Under the pieces are notes generated by a model. It ran no database searches. It had not been told where the DNA came from and saw only the letters and a program-made list of their open reading frames with translations. A program made the translations under genes and the position numbers. A DNA stretch of 58,826 bases, the filler included, from Dugesia japonica (Eukaryota), in assembly GCA_001938525.1 (NCBI GenBank). It is 5 parts of 5 records of this genome, joined end to end, with 100 filler letters (N's around TTAATTAATTAA, not from the genome) between each part and the next. Parts side by side here need not be neighbours in the genome. Positions count along the whole stretch, not along the records: positions 1 to 14,080 come from MQRL01540625.1; 4 more parts are not named here. One strand, written 5' to 3'. This document shows, one piece after another, positions 1-12,799 of the stretch. Each line of letters begins with the position of its first letter. Position 1 is the first letter of the stretch.

Positions 1-410
1 ATTATTTGAAACTTAATAAATAAATATAAAGAAAATATAAGAAAATTCGGCCAAATATATAGAAATTGAGCAAAGTAAGTGAAAATCGGGCAAAATCGTA
101 CAAAATCGGATAAAATAGAGATAAATAGGGTAAATATGGTAACATAGGGTAAGTATTATAAAAACTAGGACAAATAGTGCAAATAGGGGTAAAACAGGAT
201 AAAATAGGGGTAAATGAGGGTGAAATACAGGTAAACAGGATAAATTAGGGATAAAATAGGGTTGAAATAAGGGTAAAATAGGGTAAACAGGATAAAATAA
301 GGGTAAATTATGGTAAATAGGGGTAAAATAGGAGTAAATAGGGATAAATCTGGCAAAATATAGGAACATTTGACAAAAAATGAGGAAATAGGGCAAATTA
401 TGGGAAAATA
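1..410 (+). repeat. Purine-rich degenerate ~10-bp tandem repeat (GGGTAAAATA / GGATAAAATA-like)
   Basis: Recurring ggg/ggat-aaaata units; the minus-strand ORFs here are low-complexity by-products. Confidence 0.7.
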
Positions 411-2760: not shown

Positions 2761-3670
2761 AGTAATCCACATGGGGGGTTTTTAAAGGGTAGTGCACCAG
2801 TATCCCTCTCCTATAAATTTACAACTGGTCTTGTGTGTACCTATTCATTTACTATGTAGGGTTAAATGAGTTTTTAAGTTTTGAACAAAGTTGATTAATT
2901 CACCACTGTCATCTCGTATATTGATTTCTATATTTTTTATGAATGAAGTTGCAACTGGTAAATACATTTGATTATTGACTATTATCTAAGCTACTTGATC
3001 ATCTGCATAAGTTTCTAGCCATAGCGATTTCAACAAAGGAACGCTAAAGTGTCCAACAATAACAGGTTCAACACTATTAATATAGATAAATATTTGATGA
3101 GAATTGTTTATTAATTTTGGATATTTAATACCACTGAATTCGTAAAAGATTATGGTTAATAAATTTAAGAGATCTAAAATCTGTAAAATATCTCAACGTT
3201 TGTTGAATTAAATTCCATTTTCAAATGTTTTCAATATTTTAATGAATTTAAATTATTTTTAATGACATTATTTCATAAAAGTTATTTCAATTAAAAAACA
3301 AATAAAACTTACTTATTAATACCATAATCGATAAAACTATAAGTAATACTAAATTTATGTTTAGTAATATTTACCTATTCAATCAATAAAATTCTACTTT
3401 CGAAGACAATAATGTCTAATACTGAAAGAGATATTAAGAGCGACATGACTAATAATCAATATTTTAAAATTTGTAATTTACTTAATTTGATATAATTTTG
3501 ATTGATGGACACTGAATAGAAACAAATCTTTAGTTATTTTAAAAAATAAAGAATAATACGTAAAAAATATAAAATAGTTTTTACTTTTTTTCAATAGCTA
3601 ATGCAACATTCAAATATATAAACAGACACACACATAAAATTAACATATTTCAAACAAAAATTATTAATGA

Positions 3671-3676
3671 AATAAT

Positions 3677-3743
<67 letters not shown>

Positions 3744-3827
3744 NNNNNNNNNNNNNNNNNNNNNNNNNNNNNNNNNNNNNNNNNNNNNNNNNNNNNNNNN
3801 NNNNNNNNNNNNNNNNNNNNNNNNNNN

Positions 3828-3884
<57 letters not shown>
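3671..3884 (+). repeat. (TAA)n microsatellite with internal gap
   Basis: Direct reading. Confidence 0.95.
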
Positions 3885-3886
<2 letters not shown>

Positions 3887-5768
3887 TTGGAGTAAAACAC
3901 CGAGTAATGAAGATTAGTTAATTAAGGGCCCAAAATAAGAACCTAAAAACTAATTGAAAATGAGGAAAAAAATAGAATTATGAAAAACCAGTAACGGGCA
4001 AGCTAACAGTTAATATTAATTAGAAAACAGAAAATTTGAAAAAATTAATTATAAAGAACTAATTGGAAAAAGTTTATAAGAAATGAAAGAAAACACAGAA
4101 AATAATATTTAAATAATCAAGGAGAATCAGAAGAGTAATGGAAAACAAACCCTTATAAGGAATACTTTGAATTATAATTAAATTAATTGAAATAAAATAA
4201 GGGAAGTAATAAAGAAAAAATAATTAATTAATTCAAAAAAAGAAAGTTAATTAAGATGAAAATCTGTAAAAGGGGAATAATTTCTCTCAGGTAGGTCAGA
4301 AATCAACAGGAAAAGAAAAATCGGAAAGCCCTTAACGAGAGAAATTCAGTTTTGTTAAAAAGGAAATGACGACACATTCAGAAAAACTCCTAATAGGTCC
4401 ATAAAGAATAGCCCAATAAGATAGCATGAAGAAGATATAGAACAAAGGCTGAAAAATTGTGAGGTGTCTAATAATAGGCACCAGTATAACATAAATAAAC
4501 TCACCGAAAAAGTCCAAAACAGTAGTGATGAGCAAAAAAGCAACTCTAGAAGAAATCTTAAAACGTAGGCCAATCAGAATAGATCAGTTGTGTCACGAAA
4601 ATGATATAAAAACTACCCAAAAAATCATAGAAAAGGAACAATTTTTTGCGAAATAATATAGCGTTAAATTTATCAAAGAAAGCTCACCAATTTATGATAT
4701 TATCAAATTTTATTTTTGGAGAAATCAATTTTAACAAGGAAGTAAACGTTTTATTGCTTATTGTGTTTTGTAATTCTGTCATTTAACTAATAAATTTTTC
4801 GTGACAATAGTTTGTGTAAAATGTCTTCACATTATTTGCCAGTTATTGTAAGAAGATAGAATTAGCCTCCCTTGTCATTCTTGAGATACACTTTCACAGA
4901 AATAATAAACCGGCCTTCTAACCGTGATTAAATGCCATGTGCAAATCTAAAAATTCACTTTCTGTCAATAGGATAAATGACTCACTCAATGCAATCAGGA
5001 GAGTAGAGATTGAGTTATTGCTAAAAGAATTCCAACTTATACACTCATTTATCATCTAGCCGTGTGAATAAAGTGGTTAGAGTTGATGTTTTAGGCGGTT
5101 TGCAATGGTGATATTTTAATCCGTTGTGATGATTATTAGTCATCTGATTACTATCGCTCATTGATTTATTATCGAAAATAAGTAAACTATAATGAAAGTC
5201 GTATTGTTTTCATAACAGTAACATTATTATTAATTATTATTAGGATTATTATCCTTGCTAATCGCATCACTACCATCCTACTGACAATCATTATTTGTAT
5301 ACTAACATTGACACAAATTATTGTTAGTATCATTACTATTATCATTTTGATTATGATTATTTTTGTTGATATGGTTATTATTAATATTCCCGTTGTTAAT
5401 ATCCGTATCGTTAGTATTATGATTACCTATATTTAGTATTATGATCATAATAACTGTAGTTAATAGTAATTACATTAGTATGATTGGTATGGTTATGGTT
5501 GCTATGGGAATTATTATTGATGATTGATATTATTACTATTATTGTTGTTAGCCGCTGCTATACTTTCTGCAGTTTCCATCTATAAATATTTATTAATAAG
5601 TTATAAGTAAGTCTAGTGAAAAATGTATTTTAACAAAATAGCAATATTAAAATCAATTGTTTTAATTATTTTCTTTTTTTTATTTGAAATTTCTTCAATT
5701 ATTATTAAATAAAATTTTCATGAAACTTTTCACAAAAACTTTATGTTCGATATTAAAACATCGTAACA

Positions 5769-7215
5769 CCCCTCTTCTTTAAGAAATTTCAACTTTTCCA
5801 CATTTCTGTATATTACTCTTCTTTGCTTGTCTTCTAGCTTGTACCTTCTTTCATGGATCTTTTCCTTTATCTCATATGGCCATTGTATCCTTCCTTGTCC
5901 TTTGACCGTACTTCGTTTTTCACCAAAACTTTCTGACAAATTTTGAAGGCTCTGAGGATTGGGTATAATTCTCCATTGATAAATTTCTCTTCTACGTCTT
6001 CATGATCGATCCATCTTTCTCTTCGAATCTCTCTTCCGTACACCATGAGTGCTGGGCTAGTTTTAATCGTCTTTTGATATGTGGCCTTCATCATGAACTC
6101 TAATTCTGGAATCTTTTTGTCGCAAAATGCTTTTCTAGATGAATTTATGCAGTCCCTGATGGTTGTAAATTGTCTCTCAACCAAGAAATTTGTCCCGTGG
6201 TTATATGGGCTCGAGTAACATAGCTTTATATCCATTTTGAATGCCATATCCTTGAATGCCTTTTATTCGAAAGTCTTCCCGCAATACATATGTATCTCTT
6301 TTGGTGCTATAAACAGTAGGATCCATCTTTCCATGATTATCTTGCATATGGTTTCCTCATCCTGTCTTCCTATTGCCAACAATTATATATATTTACTATA
6401 GTGATCCATTATAGCTAGAATGTATTTATTTTTCTGAAGGGTCTCTTTGAGCGGTCCACAAACGTCGATATAGATATTTTCAAGTAAATGGTTAGCTTGC
6501 AGTGTTATTTTATCTTCTTTCGTTATTGATGTATACACTTTATTTTATTCCTTTCTTGAAAACCTAGCACTGATGTATTTATTAAAGCCTGTTTCAATTC
6601 TTGAGATGCCTCGTTGCATATTGGTGTCCATATTAGCTTGTCTTTGTTTCTGTCACAATCCATTTAATGTTTTGGCTTTTGTAGAATATCCCTTGATGAA
6701 TTTCCGGTAGTAGTTACATATACCTCGATAGTTTCTGACTTGTTTTGTACATTTTGGCCTCTCGAAGTTCTGTATAATTTCTCCTTTTGTAGACTCTGTT
6801 TGGATGCCATTTTCTTCCAATATAAGTCCTAGAAACTTTACCTCCTTCTGCAAGAGACTGCATTTTTTAGGGTTGATACGTAATCCAGCTTTTGATACCT
6901 CTTTCAGCACAATGTCCAGCATCTTGAAATAGTCTTTGACATTATCCGAATAAATTAAAATATCATCCATATATACCGTAGCTCCAGGTGTGCTTCCCAG
7001 TTCTTTTCTCATAAATTCCTGGAATGGGCCTTTCACTGCTGCAATTCCAAACGGCATCGTCGTCAAATAGTATTGACCTTTTTTGGTAGAAAACGCTGTT
7101 TTCTCCAGTGATGATTCCTTCAATTTAAGCTAATAATACGCATTGCCTAGATCAATTGTGCTGAAAAAACGGGCTCCATTTAATCCATCTAGCAGTTCAT
7201 TTGTGTTTGGCATTG
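5769..7215 (-). mobile_element. Ty3/Gypsy pol remnant (RT joined to integrase, RNase H deleted) with PPT
   Basis: KTAFST...MPFG...VYMDDILIYS...KFLG...NYYRKFIKGYS; integrase IDVCGP, SSPY..N..VER; C-terminus RNVEKLK; PPT AAGAAGAGGGG followed by TG at 5768; frameshifts. Confidence 0.93.
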
Positions 7216-7219
7216 GACC

Positions 7220-7400
7220 AAAAATTGATCAAATCACCCAAAAATGAGCCATGTTAACCATTCCCGAGAAAATATTTGACTAAATTCTCCTGAATTAACC
7301 AAAAATTGACCTCATTCGACCTCACTGAGGAAAGTTTGAACAAAACTTGCTAAAACCAATCCAAAATTGACCTCATTCGACTTCACCGAATAAATTCCCA
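7220..7400 (+). repeat. Dispersed ~59-bp-unit repeat, copy 2
   Basis: AAAATTGACCTCATTCGAC(C/T)TCAC repeated at ~59-nt spacing. Confidence 0.55.
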
Positions 7401-9217
7401 ACTATGAAGCCTAACAACTATTACTGCTTAAAAAGCCTGAAAAAACTTTCTTAAATAAATACACAGAGAATAAATATTGTGCAAAATTGTTTCTTGTTAA
7501 TTGAAACAAAAAAATTAATTTGAGGTCAATTGAAGTGTAAACTTTTGTATCTAATATTGTTTATTTTTAAGGTGTGAAAATTGATATCTTGGGTGTCAAT
7601 TTATATGTTTATATTAAGGTGAAAACGTTCACACCTGAGATAATTTAAACATCCTGATCTGATGCTCGAGTATCTACCTACTCCAATTCAATAACTAAAT
7701 CCGTTTATTAGAACTAATTACACGGCCTACGATAACAGGGAATAGTTCGAGCTTCATTAATATTTGATTCTCGAGGGAACATTTCGGCAAAGCACGCCAG
7801 ATCTGTCTCGTCTGTATGCTGGATATTCTCGGGAAACAAAACGTTTGAGTCCAATTGTCGCTGTCGGACAGCCTTGCTCTCTTTGTGGATCAGACGCAAT
7901 GAACTATAGAAAACTTTGGACATATCTAGAATGACAATTATAGGATTTAGTAGTTAGAAATTTCGGGCTGTAAAAAGTTCATGGAGATCCAAATCTTAAG
8001 GATGAGATAAATAACTATCATAAATAGAGAGAATATAATTGGGTAAATATAATCGTCACCGCAAAATTATGTCAACCGAAAATGCTAATTATAACTATGT
8101 TAGTCCGAAACGTTACTCCATTTAATGAAAGACAAGGATAACAATTAAGCATAATGGTAATTAATCATGATAATAATCATAAAAATAATGAGGCTTTCCT
8201 AAATGAGGATAATAGACACAAAGACATCGATGACCCCTAATATCAATAATAATATTAATCACCAATAATAATAGCGGTTAGAAGTGGAATCTTCCCATGC
8301 ACAGAAACGAGCATGGAAAACGCAGCTTGAGACCTTTGCAGACATCATCCGTCACTGCATGATAGAGAAAGTAAGCTCGTGGCAGATATCTTAGATTTTA
8401 GCAAACGGTTGTTATTATACCCCTATTTCACCGACAAATCTATCCAAGCCCCCCCGGAGTTGAATGTTTTGGTACCTGCTTGACAGTTTCTTAAAAATAT
8501 AATCTTTATGCAATTATGTCTTAGATTTCATTAAATTCTATGAAGTTGATATTTTACTATATTACTCAAATTATTAAAATGTTGCGTAACATAATTGTTC
8601 GTGGTTTATCCTGTAATTTTCATTATAGTGCCAAGAATTTGCCTCCCAAACAGTTTACGGAAGTTCCACAAGTTGCTACAAAAATTCATTATTGAACGGC
8701 ATTACACCAAAAGTTGTGTACAAACGCTGCTCCATCACATCTCCCAGAAAAATCGATTAATTAAAAAACTAAAGGTTGTTATTTAAAAGCAGCTAAAGAT
8801 CACTAATCCTATGGCCAACCAGCTATTAAATAACGTCAATTTTCTCAACCAATATATCGCGGAGATAACCGCCCGTTTTGACCTGGCGACATGGACCACC
8901 TGGAACAGAGACGATGATGAGGCCGCGTTTGATTTTACAAACGACTTGACTGTACAATGGAATAATCCTGAAACGTTTGATACCTTATAAATAAATTTTT
9001 CTTGTGTATAACTGTTCTGCCTTATATGTAATGAGTCATAAAGGCAATTTTGAACCCGAATTAAAGGTGTGCAAGTCTAAACTCTAACTACGGGTTGAAA
9101 GTCAACGGACCACACCGAAACCTAACCAGGGACGTTTAGGTTAAAATTTTTGCAGGGTCCTATGAGGACTGATTTTCCCCTACCCATAATTTTCTTCCAT
9201 CCACTCAGATGGAACAC

Positions 9218-9284
<67 letters not shown>

Positions 9285-9334
9285 NNNNNNNNNNNNNNNN
9301 NNNNNNNNNNNNNNNNNNNNNNNNNNNNNNNNNN

Positions 9335-9390
<56 letters not shown>

Positions 9391-9406
9391 GTAATTATAA
9401 TAATAA
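9218..9406 (+). repeat. (TAA)n microsatellite with internal gap
   Basis: Direct reading. Confidence 0.95.
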
Positions 9407-9559
9407 TGTAAAACATCTTTTGAAAAGTGAATATAAAATATTTTTCAATTAAATTTCTTAAGTTAAAATACAATTTGACTTTAGTTCTTTTATTGATGTT
9501 TTCTATAAATCCGCAATATTACATTTAAACAAATTTTGATTGTTTATATTATATTAATC

Positions 9560-9990
9560 TTGCGAGATACAAAATTATTGGGTTCAGTAAAGATTAACCC
9601 CACGTTACCTGCACATTTTAATTCTGCCTCCAAGTTAACATCACTAATTTCAGATCGGTATTTTGATTTTATGAAAGTTACAGCTAAGAAAATAGATTCA
9701 CACGTTATGTTGTTCAAACAAACTCAATAGCTGAGTTGAGAACCACAAACTTACTTTTAGAGGCGAGTGCACATCAATAAAATAGATTTATAGTTTCCAG
9801 GATAATCGATTTGGCCTTGAAAGCTAAAGCATATTTGTTTCAAAAGCACGTTGATCCAAACTTAATAATTTCGCGACATCTTTAGACAATCCAAAATTTG
9901 TGATGTCAAAACGAAAAGAATCTTTCAATAGTTGAAAAGTAGGTCTGAATTTCTTAACATCAATAAAGCGTTCTTCAAATTTTCTTTGCA
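9560..9990 (-). mobile_element. hAT transposase C-terminal remnant (SPIN/GTF2IRD2-like)
   Basis: LQRKFEERFIDVKKFRPTF...FRFD and CESIFLAVTFIKSKYRSEISDVNLEAELKCA match the hAT dimerisation-domain pattern; frameshifted. Confidence 0.75.
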
Positions 9991-10472
9991 GTTTCTGCAT
10001 CTACCCGACACAGTGCTGTTTATTAAAATTAGTATCTTTGTTAAGAATGTTTGCGCTTAAATTATTTGGTGTCGAAAACTTAAGTAACAAACTATGATAA
10101 AAATCTTTTTTCTACTCATTTTGGTAGACTATTAAAAAAATTAATGAATTTAATTAATGACAAAAGATCTCTGGTAAAACTTGTTAGAATACTAATTGCG
10201 TATACGTATGTGTGTAAATTTATATATGAAATATACTGGATAATATGAAGAAAATAGGAATTTTCGACGATAAATAATGAAGTGTTTGTTGAGAGTCATG
10301 GTTGTTTTAAATGATCTGAAACATGGAACTAATGAAGAATCAACTCAATGCAACATCAAATAATGTTACTAGTTTTGATCAACTATACAGAATTAATAAA
10401 AGGAATTAAAGTCCACTGAAAGGAAAGAATTATAGATTATGGAAAGACAGATTTAGAATAAGAATATGCGCT

Positions 10473-11458
10473 TCAATTTTTGGAAAAATCGAGAGGAAGT
10501 CCATAACAATAGAGAGCCAAATCTGATATTGAAAATTAATGAAACTTATCGAAACCAAAAGAATAAACAAAATATTTTTTTTTTAATTAAATTTGAACGA
10601 AATTACTTAAACTTAATTAGGCTTAATTAAAAAATTAATTACCAATTTCATATAACGCAGGACATTCTGAAATTCAATAAAATAATTTTTAATATTTACA
10701 ATTTTACTTTTGCACATTTCCTGAGAGATTTCACAGTTTTTGGACTGATCTGCTGAAAGTGAAAAATATCATTAAAAATATAAACAATAAATTTTACACA
10801 ATCCAATTTAAATCAATTAAATAATTTTTAAATAAAATAATACTAAACTAGTACTTTATTACTTCATTAAAATAAGAAAAAGCTTCAATCAAAATAAAAT
10901 TTATTTGTAAAAAGTTCAAATTTTCGACAATAGTCTTCTTCGGGAACCTAGAAGTTGTGGAACCAATAGTGGTAGAAGACTATTGTCGAAAATTTGAAGT
11001 TTTTTACAAATAAATTTTATTTTGATCGAAGCTTTTTCTTATTTCAATGAAATCTCAAATGCGATCAATGGTTCAGTCCAATGGTACTTTATTACTTAAT
11101 TAAAATTAATTACCAGTTTTAATAAAGGCAGGACATTCTGAAATTCAATAAAATAATTTTTAATTTTTTACAATTTTACTTTTGCAAATTTCCTGAGAGA
11201 TTTCACAGTTCTTGGACTGCAGTGCTGAAAGTGAAAAATATCATTAAAAATATAAACAATAAATTTTACACAATCCAAATTAAAATGAATTAATTCATTA
11301 AATTAATGAATAAATTACTTACGATCTTTGCAAATTGCATCACATGTGTCACATTGTCCATCAATTGTTGGAAATCTTGTTAGATAAAAACATTTATTTT
11401 CTTTACTAAATGTTTCTGAACCTGTGGAAATTAACAAAAAAATTGTCAGCACAATCAT
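10473..11458 (-). CDS. Predicted secreted Cys-rich peptide with micro-exons: E1 11458-11323, E2a 11224-11180, E3a 11137-11114, E2b 10752-10708, E3b 10666-10643, E4 10522-10473
   Basis: All introns GT..CAG and phase 1. E1 MIVLTIFLLISTGSETFSKENKCFYLTRFPTIDGQCDTCDAICKD; cassette a PLQSKNCEISQEICK+KCPAFIKT; cassette b (P/A)DQSKNCEISQEMCK+KCPALYEI; E4 DLALYCYGLPLDFSKN*. No premature stops. Confidence 0.75.
10865..11083. mobile_element. 219-bp Penelope-like palindromic insertion with 14-bp TSD and degenerate hammerhead core
   Basis: GTACTTTATTACTT at 10851-10864 and 11084-11097; inverted arms 10863-10939 and 10974-11051; minus strand reads CCGAAGA-A-GAC-TATT-GTC-GAAA. Confidence 0.7.
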
Positions 11459-11530
11459 AATTTTGACAAATATTTTTATTAATTAAATAAATTAAAGTAA
11501 GATTTTATTCGTATTACAAAATGTCAATGA

Positions 11531-11543
11531 TGACTCATTTATA
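11531..11543 (-). promoter_or_regulatory. Candidate TATA box (TATAAAT) overlapping an AP-1-like TGAGTCA, ~80 nt upstream of the peptide ATG
   Basis: Minus strand TATAAATGAGTCA; motifs are weak evidence in AT-rich DNA. Confidence 0.35.
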
Positions 11544-12799
11544 ACAAATAAATTGATCAGTAAAATCAGTTAAAACAAATAATTAATTTAATATTCAATT
11601 ATCTCTTTGTTTATTGAACACAATTTATTATTGATAATATAGAAAATTTATTTACTTTTATTTTGATTAATATAATTTGTTTAAATCAATCAAATTATTT
11701 CATTATTTGAAAATTAAAAAATTAATGGAATTGTTTTGTTTGTTGGTTTTGATATTTATTTGTTATTTATGAAAATAGATTGCATTTTTTATAGAAAACT
11801 TGAGAAAATGCAATAATTCGATTACAATGTTGAGTCTTATTTCTTGTATTATCAATTGTTTGCTAAATACTATGATATATTTGAATTTCCAAACTGTATT
11901 TTAATTAATTGATTTTTCAAAATCAAAAAAATTTTGACTTATCAAGGAGATCAAACAAATATTTTTAAAAAAAATGTAATAATTAAAATTTATTTTCAAT
12001 TACAAAGATCAAAAATGATGTTTTTCTATTTTCAAAGATTGTTCAATATTTCGGCTATGCATTCTTCAGGAACAACAACTATTACTCAATTCATTCTGGT
12101 TATAAACGTTAATATAGAGACACAATTTAAATTAATCTGATTAAAATCAATTTTCATTGGTAACTAATTATAACATTAAATTTAAAATTTATCGAGCATT
12201 TTCTCGGCAATATGGTGTGTTAGTTGGATTTGGAACACTCGTCGTATTATCAATATCAAAATCCGAATTCATAAGAAATACTTTATTANNNNNNNNNNNN
12301 NNNNNNNNNNNNNNNNNNNNNNNNNNNNNNNNNNNNNNNNNNNNNNNNNNNNNNNNNNNNNNNNNNNNNNNNNNNNNNNNNNNNNNNNNNGAAAGTTTTA
12401 TTTATTAAGATTAATTTTTAAAAATTTGCGACAACATTTTAACTACTTTAAAATTTAATTTATTCAAATTAATTTGATCCATTTAAAAACATTTTATTTA
12501 TTTTCTTAATTTTATTTTAAAATTTTATAACAAAATTTTAACTTCTTTAAAATTTTATTTATTAAAATTAATTCCATCCATTTAAAAACATTTAATTTAT
12601 TTTCTTAATTGTCCTTTAAAAATTTACGATAAAATTAACTATTTTAAAATTTTATTTATTAAAAAGTTAAACTTATATTCAATAATTTTAATTTATTCTT
12701 AAACCAAATATTTATTTATTTAAATTTTTCGTCCATAATTTAGATCTCTCTTTTAAACAAAATATTTTAAAAATAAGATCAACAATCCCACAAAAATTT

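Follow-up and report, generated by a model that had tools for sequence, protein, structure and literature searches.

Conotoxin superfamilies are hypervariable, secreted, Cys-rich peptides; CS-alpha-beta defensins carry a CxC element; and in mutually exclusive clusters of tandem exons (Dscam type), exactly one exon enters each mRNA. Mussel MgCRP-I is a hypervariable family of secreted peptides in which exons change faster, the Cys residues are fixed, and the leader is conserved (PMC4558851). Schistosome micro-exon genes (MEGs) are treated in two reviews (PMC4015677; PMC8293314), both of which cite DeMarco et al. (2010). By definition, symmetric exons no longer than 36 bp make up most of the coding sequence of a MEG, and in MEG-3.1 a transposable-element fragment lies beside a duplicated micro-exon (PMC8293314). 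Host-interface genes of schistosomes likewise show fast change of exons relative to introns, according to work cited in PMC8293314.

The locus described here was found in Dugesia japonica (GCA_001938525.1), in a window (the whole stretch of DNA that was analyzed) of 58,826 nt. It is very probably a gene on the minus strand, with seven exons or more and two serially included exon cassettes, belonging to a fast-evolving, lineage-restricted family of Cys-rich secreted or surface proteins. The schistosome MEGs, with which the original prediction compared it, are matched in general plan: a conventional first exon bears the leader (136 nt here; leader recognized by heuristic), a run of short symmetric exons follows (lengths 45, 24, 45, 24, and 30 nt, each of phase 1-1), a small product is predicted to be secreted or anchored, as for some MEGs, and the family is lineage-restricted with fast-evolving coding sequence. 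As in MEG-3.1, an exon duplication adjoins a transposable-element fragment. The comparison holds for symmetric-exon architecture but not for exon size or sequence, and no skipping was seen. MEG exons are mostly 36 nt or less, whereas exons of this size make up 78 of 351 coding nt here (24 + 24 + 30; 22%), and exons of up to 45 nt make up 168 (48%). Schistosome MEGs make protein variants by skipping micro-exons; here, the full-inclusion path stands alone in contigs of three runs, in which rare isoforms are invisible. The product is Cys-rich, unlike those of MEGs. No relationship to a described MEG family was found for the exon-1 peptide (45 aa) by Pfam, word search, or phmmer. The genome searched here (854 Mb, AT-rich) is far larger than a schistosome genome. 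MEG-like diversification outside schistosomes, whereby module number would change through micro-exon-pair duplication and the pairs would also be skipped in certain cell types or conditions, with prey, microbes, or conspecifics exerting diversifying selection, is in our view unlikely.

Closer likenesses are to MgCRP-I and the conotoxin superfamilies: a conserved leader and conserved non-coding sequence combined with a hypervariable mature region, an invariant Cys framework, and no relatives outside the lineage (for exon 1, the part searched here). The Cys spacing differs from both (C-x12-C-x2-C-x3-C, then C-x6-C-x2-C per module), and further differences are that the mature part is split over micro-exons, that there is a hydrophobic C-terminal tail, and that module number varies by duplication of an exon pair. 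Judged from sequence, the gene is best placed, as a new and lineage-restricted member, among the families of hypervariable, Cys-rich peptides that are putatively secreted or at the surface.

The peptide family was not recognized when the gene was predicted, and we likewise found no relative of exon 1: the homology searches used the exon-1 peptide only, a 45-aa query of limited power, and gave no Pfam match and no word-search candidate. An exhaustive phmmer search of 1.84 billion representatives gave two matches, both to tandem-repeat proteins and both sums of short matches, which we regard as spurious. A defensin or knottin identity was also considered and rejected; the best feature score in the protein atlas (0.77, to plant clusters) falls short of the value from which the tool counts a hit as more than a lead, and there was no Pfam match. 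Unlike CS-alpha-beta defensins, the gene has a C-x2-C-x3-C ... C-x6-C-x2-C spacing without the CxC element. We know of no toxin or antimicrobial activity for this gene family.

Exon structure and use of the two cassettes

The original prediction was of a micro-exon gene missed by the ORF track, and such a gene exists, spliced as predicted from exon 1 (E1) through exon 3b (E3b). Exon borders were recovered by a script that located the predicted borders on the minus strand. E1 (11323-11458, 136 nt) starts with ATG; it encodes the hydrophobic leader, which covers roughly residues 1-13, and then the first four Cys, arranged C-x12-C-x2-C-x3-C. Cassette a consists of E2a (11180-11224, 45 nt) and E3a (11114-11137, 24 nt), and cassette b of E2b (10708-10752, 45 nt) and E3b (10643-10666, 24 nt). 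All four exons are phase 1-1, and each is bordered by ttcag (acceptor) and gtaa (donor). From E1 to E3b, the introns measure 98, 42, 361, and 41 nt, and 120 nt precede the last exon as originally predicted. The script reproduced exactly the GT..CAG introns of 41, 42, and 98 nt, the duplicated 45+24-nt pair, and the 1-1 phases that had been read from the sequence; the translations reproduce the differences between cassettes (LQ/DQ, I/M, FIKT/LYEI; 7 of 23 residues), with all three Cys and the splice sites kept. Translation and hydropathy also bear out the hydrophobic leader and the Cys-rich product.

Upstream of E1, a TATAAAT motif (11537-11543, minus strand) lies 79-85 nt before the ATG and is a possible core promoter. 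In-frame TAA codons sit upstream of the ATG, the 5' flank is 98% identical to that of a paralog (L002), and depth in run X8 drops to background upstream of about 11503. A separate 325-nt X8 contig (11392-11716) is colinear with the genome over the start codon and 258 nt upstream, at depth 8 vs. 87 for the spliced form; it could represent a minor long 5' UTR, pre-mRNA, or DNA carry-over.

Twenty public runs contain part of the stretch, and several RNA-like runs hold 10-26% of the sampled words, approximately the share expected from exons alone. Sequences from four runs were aligned to 10100-11900: contigs of X9, X11, and X8, which come from three different studies, are assembled, were classed as RNA by guess, and hide rare isoforms; and raw poly-A reads of X22. 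Three joints are present in X9, X11, and X8: 11224>11323 (skipping 98 nt), 11137>11180 (skipping 42 nt), and 10752>11114 (skipping 361 nt). The fourth, 10666>10708 (skipping 41 nt), is present in X9 and X8 (two of the three contig runs). All joints are CT..AC on the plus strand, corresponding to GT..AG on the minus strand, at the exact predicted bases, and in X8 all four have an equal depth of 87.1, fitting a single contig from E1 to E3b. An intron-less DNA copy is not the source of the joints, as the genome search gave none. Run X22 has zero reads on the exons; thus, expression is not universal.

The 361-nt joint removes the inter-cassette intron (10753-11113) whole and joins E3a to E2b, so that in the contigs of three studies a single mRNA carries the two cassettes serially. 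Mutually exclusive or combinatorial use of the cassettes, as originally proposed, finds no support here, and no alternative junction is listed: among the joints listed for contigs of X9, X11, and X8 there is no E1>E2b joint, and among the listed loose ends none belongs to a transcript leaving E3a (at 11114) for a downstream exon. Constitutive inclusion of both cassettes speaks, on the proposal's own terms, against switching and not against the gene. Because contigs can miss rare isoforms, we regard switching as unsupported rather than disproved.

The two-cassette mRNA might still be only the bulk form, and certain cells or conditions might use the cassettes alternatively or combinatorially, yielding peptide variants. 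Every internal exon is symmetric (phase 1-1), such that any skip stays in frame; the two cassettes encode different residues at nearly a third of their positions; a strong hairpin within the inter-cassette intron could influence splice choice; and rare variants drop out of contigs, with 71 loose ends lying outside the listing. However, E3a is joined to E2b in contigs of all three studies, neither an E1>E2b joint nor a loose end at 11114 is among those listed, and the parity argument is gone, as the two-cassette product has an even number of Cys (10). Switching is therefore unlikely, and serial inclusion is the form that the contigs contain. With mutually exclusive exons of the Dscam type the locus shares tandem duplicated exons of equal length and phase; unlike in those clusters, both copies occur in the same mRNA (10752>11114 in X9, X11, and X8), contrary to the rule of one per transcript.

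Paralogs, rates of change, and the second cassette

Three more intact paralogs of the 5' part of the gene (L002, L003, and L021) are present in the genome, each with a single cassette. Identity to the window copy is 88-90% for L002 over exons and introns and 78-80% for L003, with L021 less similar than these. Their exon plan is the same (E1 of 136-154 nt, E2 of 45 nt, and E3 of 24 or 30 nt), and the borders are GT-AG in each. Because the other intact copies have one cassette, the two-cassette state is derived and specific to the window locus. A fifth copy, L024 (G000:C613949, 1166-1500), has a recognizable leader and exon layout and has lost the Cys of C-x2-C-x3-C and C-x6-C; it looks decayed. 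An E2-like segment recurs in L024 after an N gap.

In the mature region, 7 of 7 Cys columns are invariant across the four intact copies, compared with 8 of the 47 remaining columns (Fisher p = 3.6e-5), which argues for a translated, disulfide-bonded product. The surrounding coding sequence changes faster than the introns. Between the window copy and L002, divergence is 16.1% in exons and 4.1% in non-coding sequence (Fisher p = 1e-5), an approximately four-fold difference; the corresponding values are 18.5 and 10.0% for the window copy vs. L003 (p = 0.02), and 20.5 and 12.0% for L002 vs. L003 (p = 0.028). The asymmetry extends to the two cassettes of the window copy, which differ at 11 of 69 exon positions and 9 of 135 non-coding positions (p = 0.046). 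Within E1, the mature part differs by 20% between the window copy and L002, compared with 4.8% for the leader and 2% for the 5' flank. Nei-Gojobori dN/dS is 1.1-1.6 among the three closest copies, values based on few sites and not clearly above 1. The likeliest reading of the fast exon change is diversifying selection; relaxed constraint combined with gene conversion of the non-coding parts, which a dN/dS near 1 also fits, is less likely.

A dN/dS of about 1.1-1.6 on few sites would also fit if the locus were transcribed and spliced but a decaying member of a dying family, its exons drifting neutrally. Other observations point the same way: L024 has lost the Cys framework, the C-terminal tail of the window copy is shorter than that of the paralogous 3' end L015 (see below) and contains charged residues, and one poly-A run shows no expression. 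Yet the frame stays open for 116 codons over seven exons, no Cys or splice site has been lost from the four paralogs or from either cassette, and the spliced form is assembled at depth 87 in one run. Moreover, neutral decay predicts equal rates, whereas here the exons outpace the introns. We consider decay quite unlikely and retain diversifying selection on a functional family as the preferred reading.

The cassette duplication is also apparent as direct repeats of 134 nt (91% identity) and 67 nt (90%) at a spacing of 471-472 nt. Similarity between the two copies begins about 75 nt before E2, takes in the exons with the 41/42-nt intron, and continues for several tens of nt after E3; this extent points to a duplication unit of about 240 bp. 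An older event may have preceded it: the C-x2-C-x3-C-K segment of E1 resembles the C-x6-C-K of the cassette (74% over 27 nt of DNA), a likeness suggesting that the cassette itself arose by internal duplication.

Within the inter-cassette intron lies a foldback repeat of 219 nt (10863-11081), with arms of 62 nt at 89% complementarity, flanked by a 12-nt direct repeat (GTACTTTATTAC) at 10851-10862 and 11084-11095. The repeat is dispersed: the genome search yielded 1530 first-look candidates, and scored copies number in the dozens. Other copies extend past the end of this one, which is thus truncated; they continue into a conserved CAATTATTCTCACAATAATTG stretch that the window copy does not have. 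The intron RNA has a folding energy of -125 kcal/mol vs. -54 kcal/mol for shuffles (z = -15.6), forming a near-perfect hairpin. For the foldback family (L004-L012 and window 10863-11081), summed contig depth exceeds 100,000 in RNA-like runs, and raw poly-A reads are present as well; such depth implies that the family is either embedded in many transcripts or itself heavily transcribed.

The 3' end of the gene and the predicted product

The last exon of the original prediction (10473-10522, minus strand, 50 nt) is unsupported: the bins 10466-10526 and 10405-10465 have zero depth in all four runs. E3b is instead spliced to a distant exon. Loose ends at 10643 extend by 255 nt in X9 and 90 nt in X8, and their 30-nt consensus is exactly 3482-3511 on the minus strand, a sequence unique in the window and in the 854-Mb genome. 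This exon 6 (3482-3511, 30 nt, phase 1-1) is bounded by cag and gtaaat, and both splice sites are kept in L015. The intron between E3b and exon 6 (3512-10642, 7131 nt) thereby encloses the exon that had been predicted; the stretch matching the latter shows about 72% conservation in L002, and most of it is deleted in L003. That 10473-10522 is a genuine alternative terminal exon giving a short soluble isoform, as a tatcag acceptor in the right phase, a frame open to a stop, and the retention of acceptor and open frame at the matching place in L002 might suggest, is highly improbable given zero depth in every run, conservation no better than that of the surrounding intron, and the deletion in L003. 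The script reproduces the two products originally described (84 aa with 8 Cys, and 107 aa with 11 Cys); because both depend on this unsupported exon, neither is a real product of the gene. Apart from this exon and the product sizes, the original reading of the sequence was largely right, and well above chance.

The large intron contains a decayed retrotransposon and N-gapped (ATT)n tracts. The pol remnant (5867-7123) has the same orientation as the gene and broken frames; it includes a reverse transcriptase domain at 6653-7123 (PF00078, E = 9.7e-16), and an RT_RNaseH_2 match at 6523-6663, below the cut-off, is a weak hint of RNase H. The G+C content of the region is about 35%, richer than its surroundings. 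Long (ATT/AAT)n microsatellites with N gaps occupy 3676-3900 and 9150-9473 and translate as poly-I or poly-N ORFs; a further ORF with an N gap, at 12157-12408, has no such repeat. All three are assembly-gap artifacts, not genes. At 13-396 (minus strand), a 127-aa ORF consists of repeated PIY/LPLF-like units; it is probably not a gene but a tandem repeat that happens to translate. Rfam gave nothing in the whole piece.

Beyond exon 6, the gene model relies on comparison with L015 (G000:C284229, 280-556, minus strand), an orphan contig with the 3' exons of one paralog. L015 is 69% identical and keeps all six splice signals of exons 6-8. It also carries a fragment of the foldback repeat, some 200 nt before the 30-nt exon. 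On the basis of this conservation, we infer that exon 7 (3375-3421, minus strand, 47 nt) is the final coding exon, encoding a hydrophobic tail and ending the frame at a TAG (3375-3377); L015 keeps its tttcag acceptor and gtaaat donor, and an 18-nt identical core is common to both. A candidate exon 8 (3313-3336, minus strand, 24 nt) has AG and GTAAG borders that are conserved in L015, and would be 3' UTR in the window copy; the stop codon of L015 falls in the matching exon, two codons into its 24 nt.

The model coding sequence, including the putative exon 7, is 351 nt and yields a protein of 116 aa with 10 Cys: four from E1 and three from each cassette. The odd number of Cys (11) noted for the two-cassette form becomes even once the revised 3' exons are used; paralogs with a single cassette have 7. 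Each cassette adds a module of 23 residues, C-x6-C-x2-C, encoded by the 45+24-nt pair. The leader has a mean Kyte-Doolittle value of 2.9 over residues 1-11, with small residues at -3/-1 before residue 14 (a heuristic), and is consistent with secretion. The C-terminal 15-20 residues are hydrophobic (mean 2.16) and interrupted by D, E, and R. In L015, the protein ends in about 22 hydrophobic residues without such interruptions (mean 2.78), a tail that resembles a membrane anchor or GPI-type signal. Given these charged residues and a stop that comes earlier than in L015, anchoring by the window-copy tail is uncertain; the product may be secreted or held at the membrane.

Proposed history and significance of the family

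We propose that the gene spans about 8.1 kb, from 11458 down to about 3375, with at least seven exons. The protein, of about 116 aa, would comprise an N-terminal secretory leader, a disulfide-rich region of 10 Cys built from the exon-1 module and two 23-residue modules, and a short hydrophobic tail that may serve as a membrane anchor or GPI-type signal. A tandem genomic duplication of about 240 bp would have copied one exon pair; since phase 1-1 is common to all the exons, the additional pair could be spliced in series, lengthening the protein by one module, with the truncated foldback repeat now lying within the new inter-cassette intron. The family, with four intact copies and one decayed copy in the genome, appears to be restricted to the lineage. 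Its members keep the leader, the introns, the splice sites, and the Cys framework but vary rapidly at the positions between Cys, a pattern typical of secreted or surface proteins in defense, predation, and other outward interactions.

Thus, a micro-exon gene missed by ORF tracks can be found from raw sequence alone, and here public transcript assemblies confirmed its micro-exon junctions to the base. There is no evidence at this locus for a new splicing mechanism. The finding adds an unannotated, lineage-restricted family of small, Cys-rich, putatively secreted or surface proteins, and illustrates a route by which such proteins grow: recent duplication of a symmetric exon pair that was spliced in frame at once, adding one 3-Cys module. 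With exons that change several times faster than introns, the family is a candidate for a role in defense, predation, or recognition.
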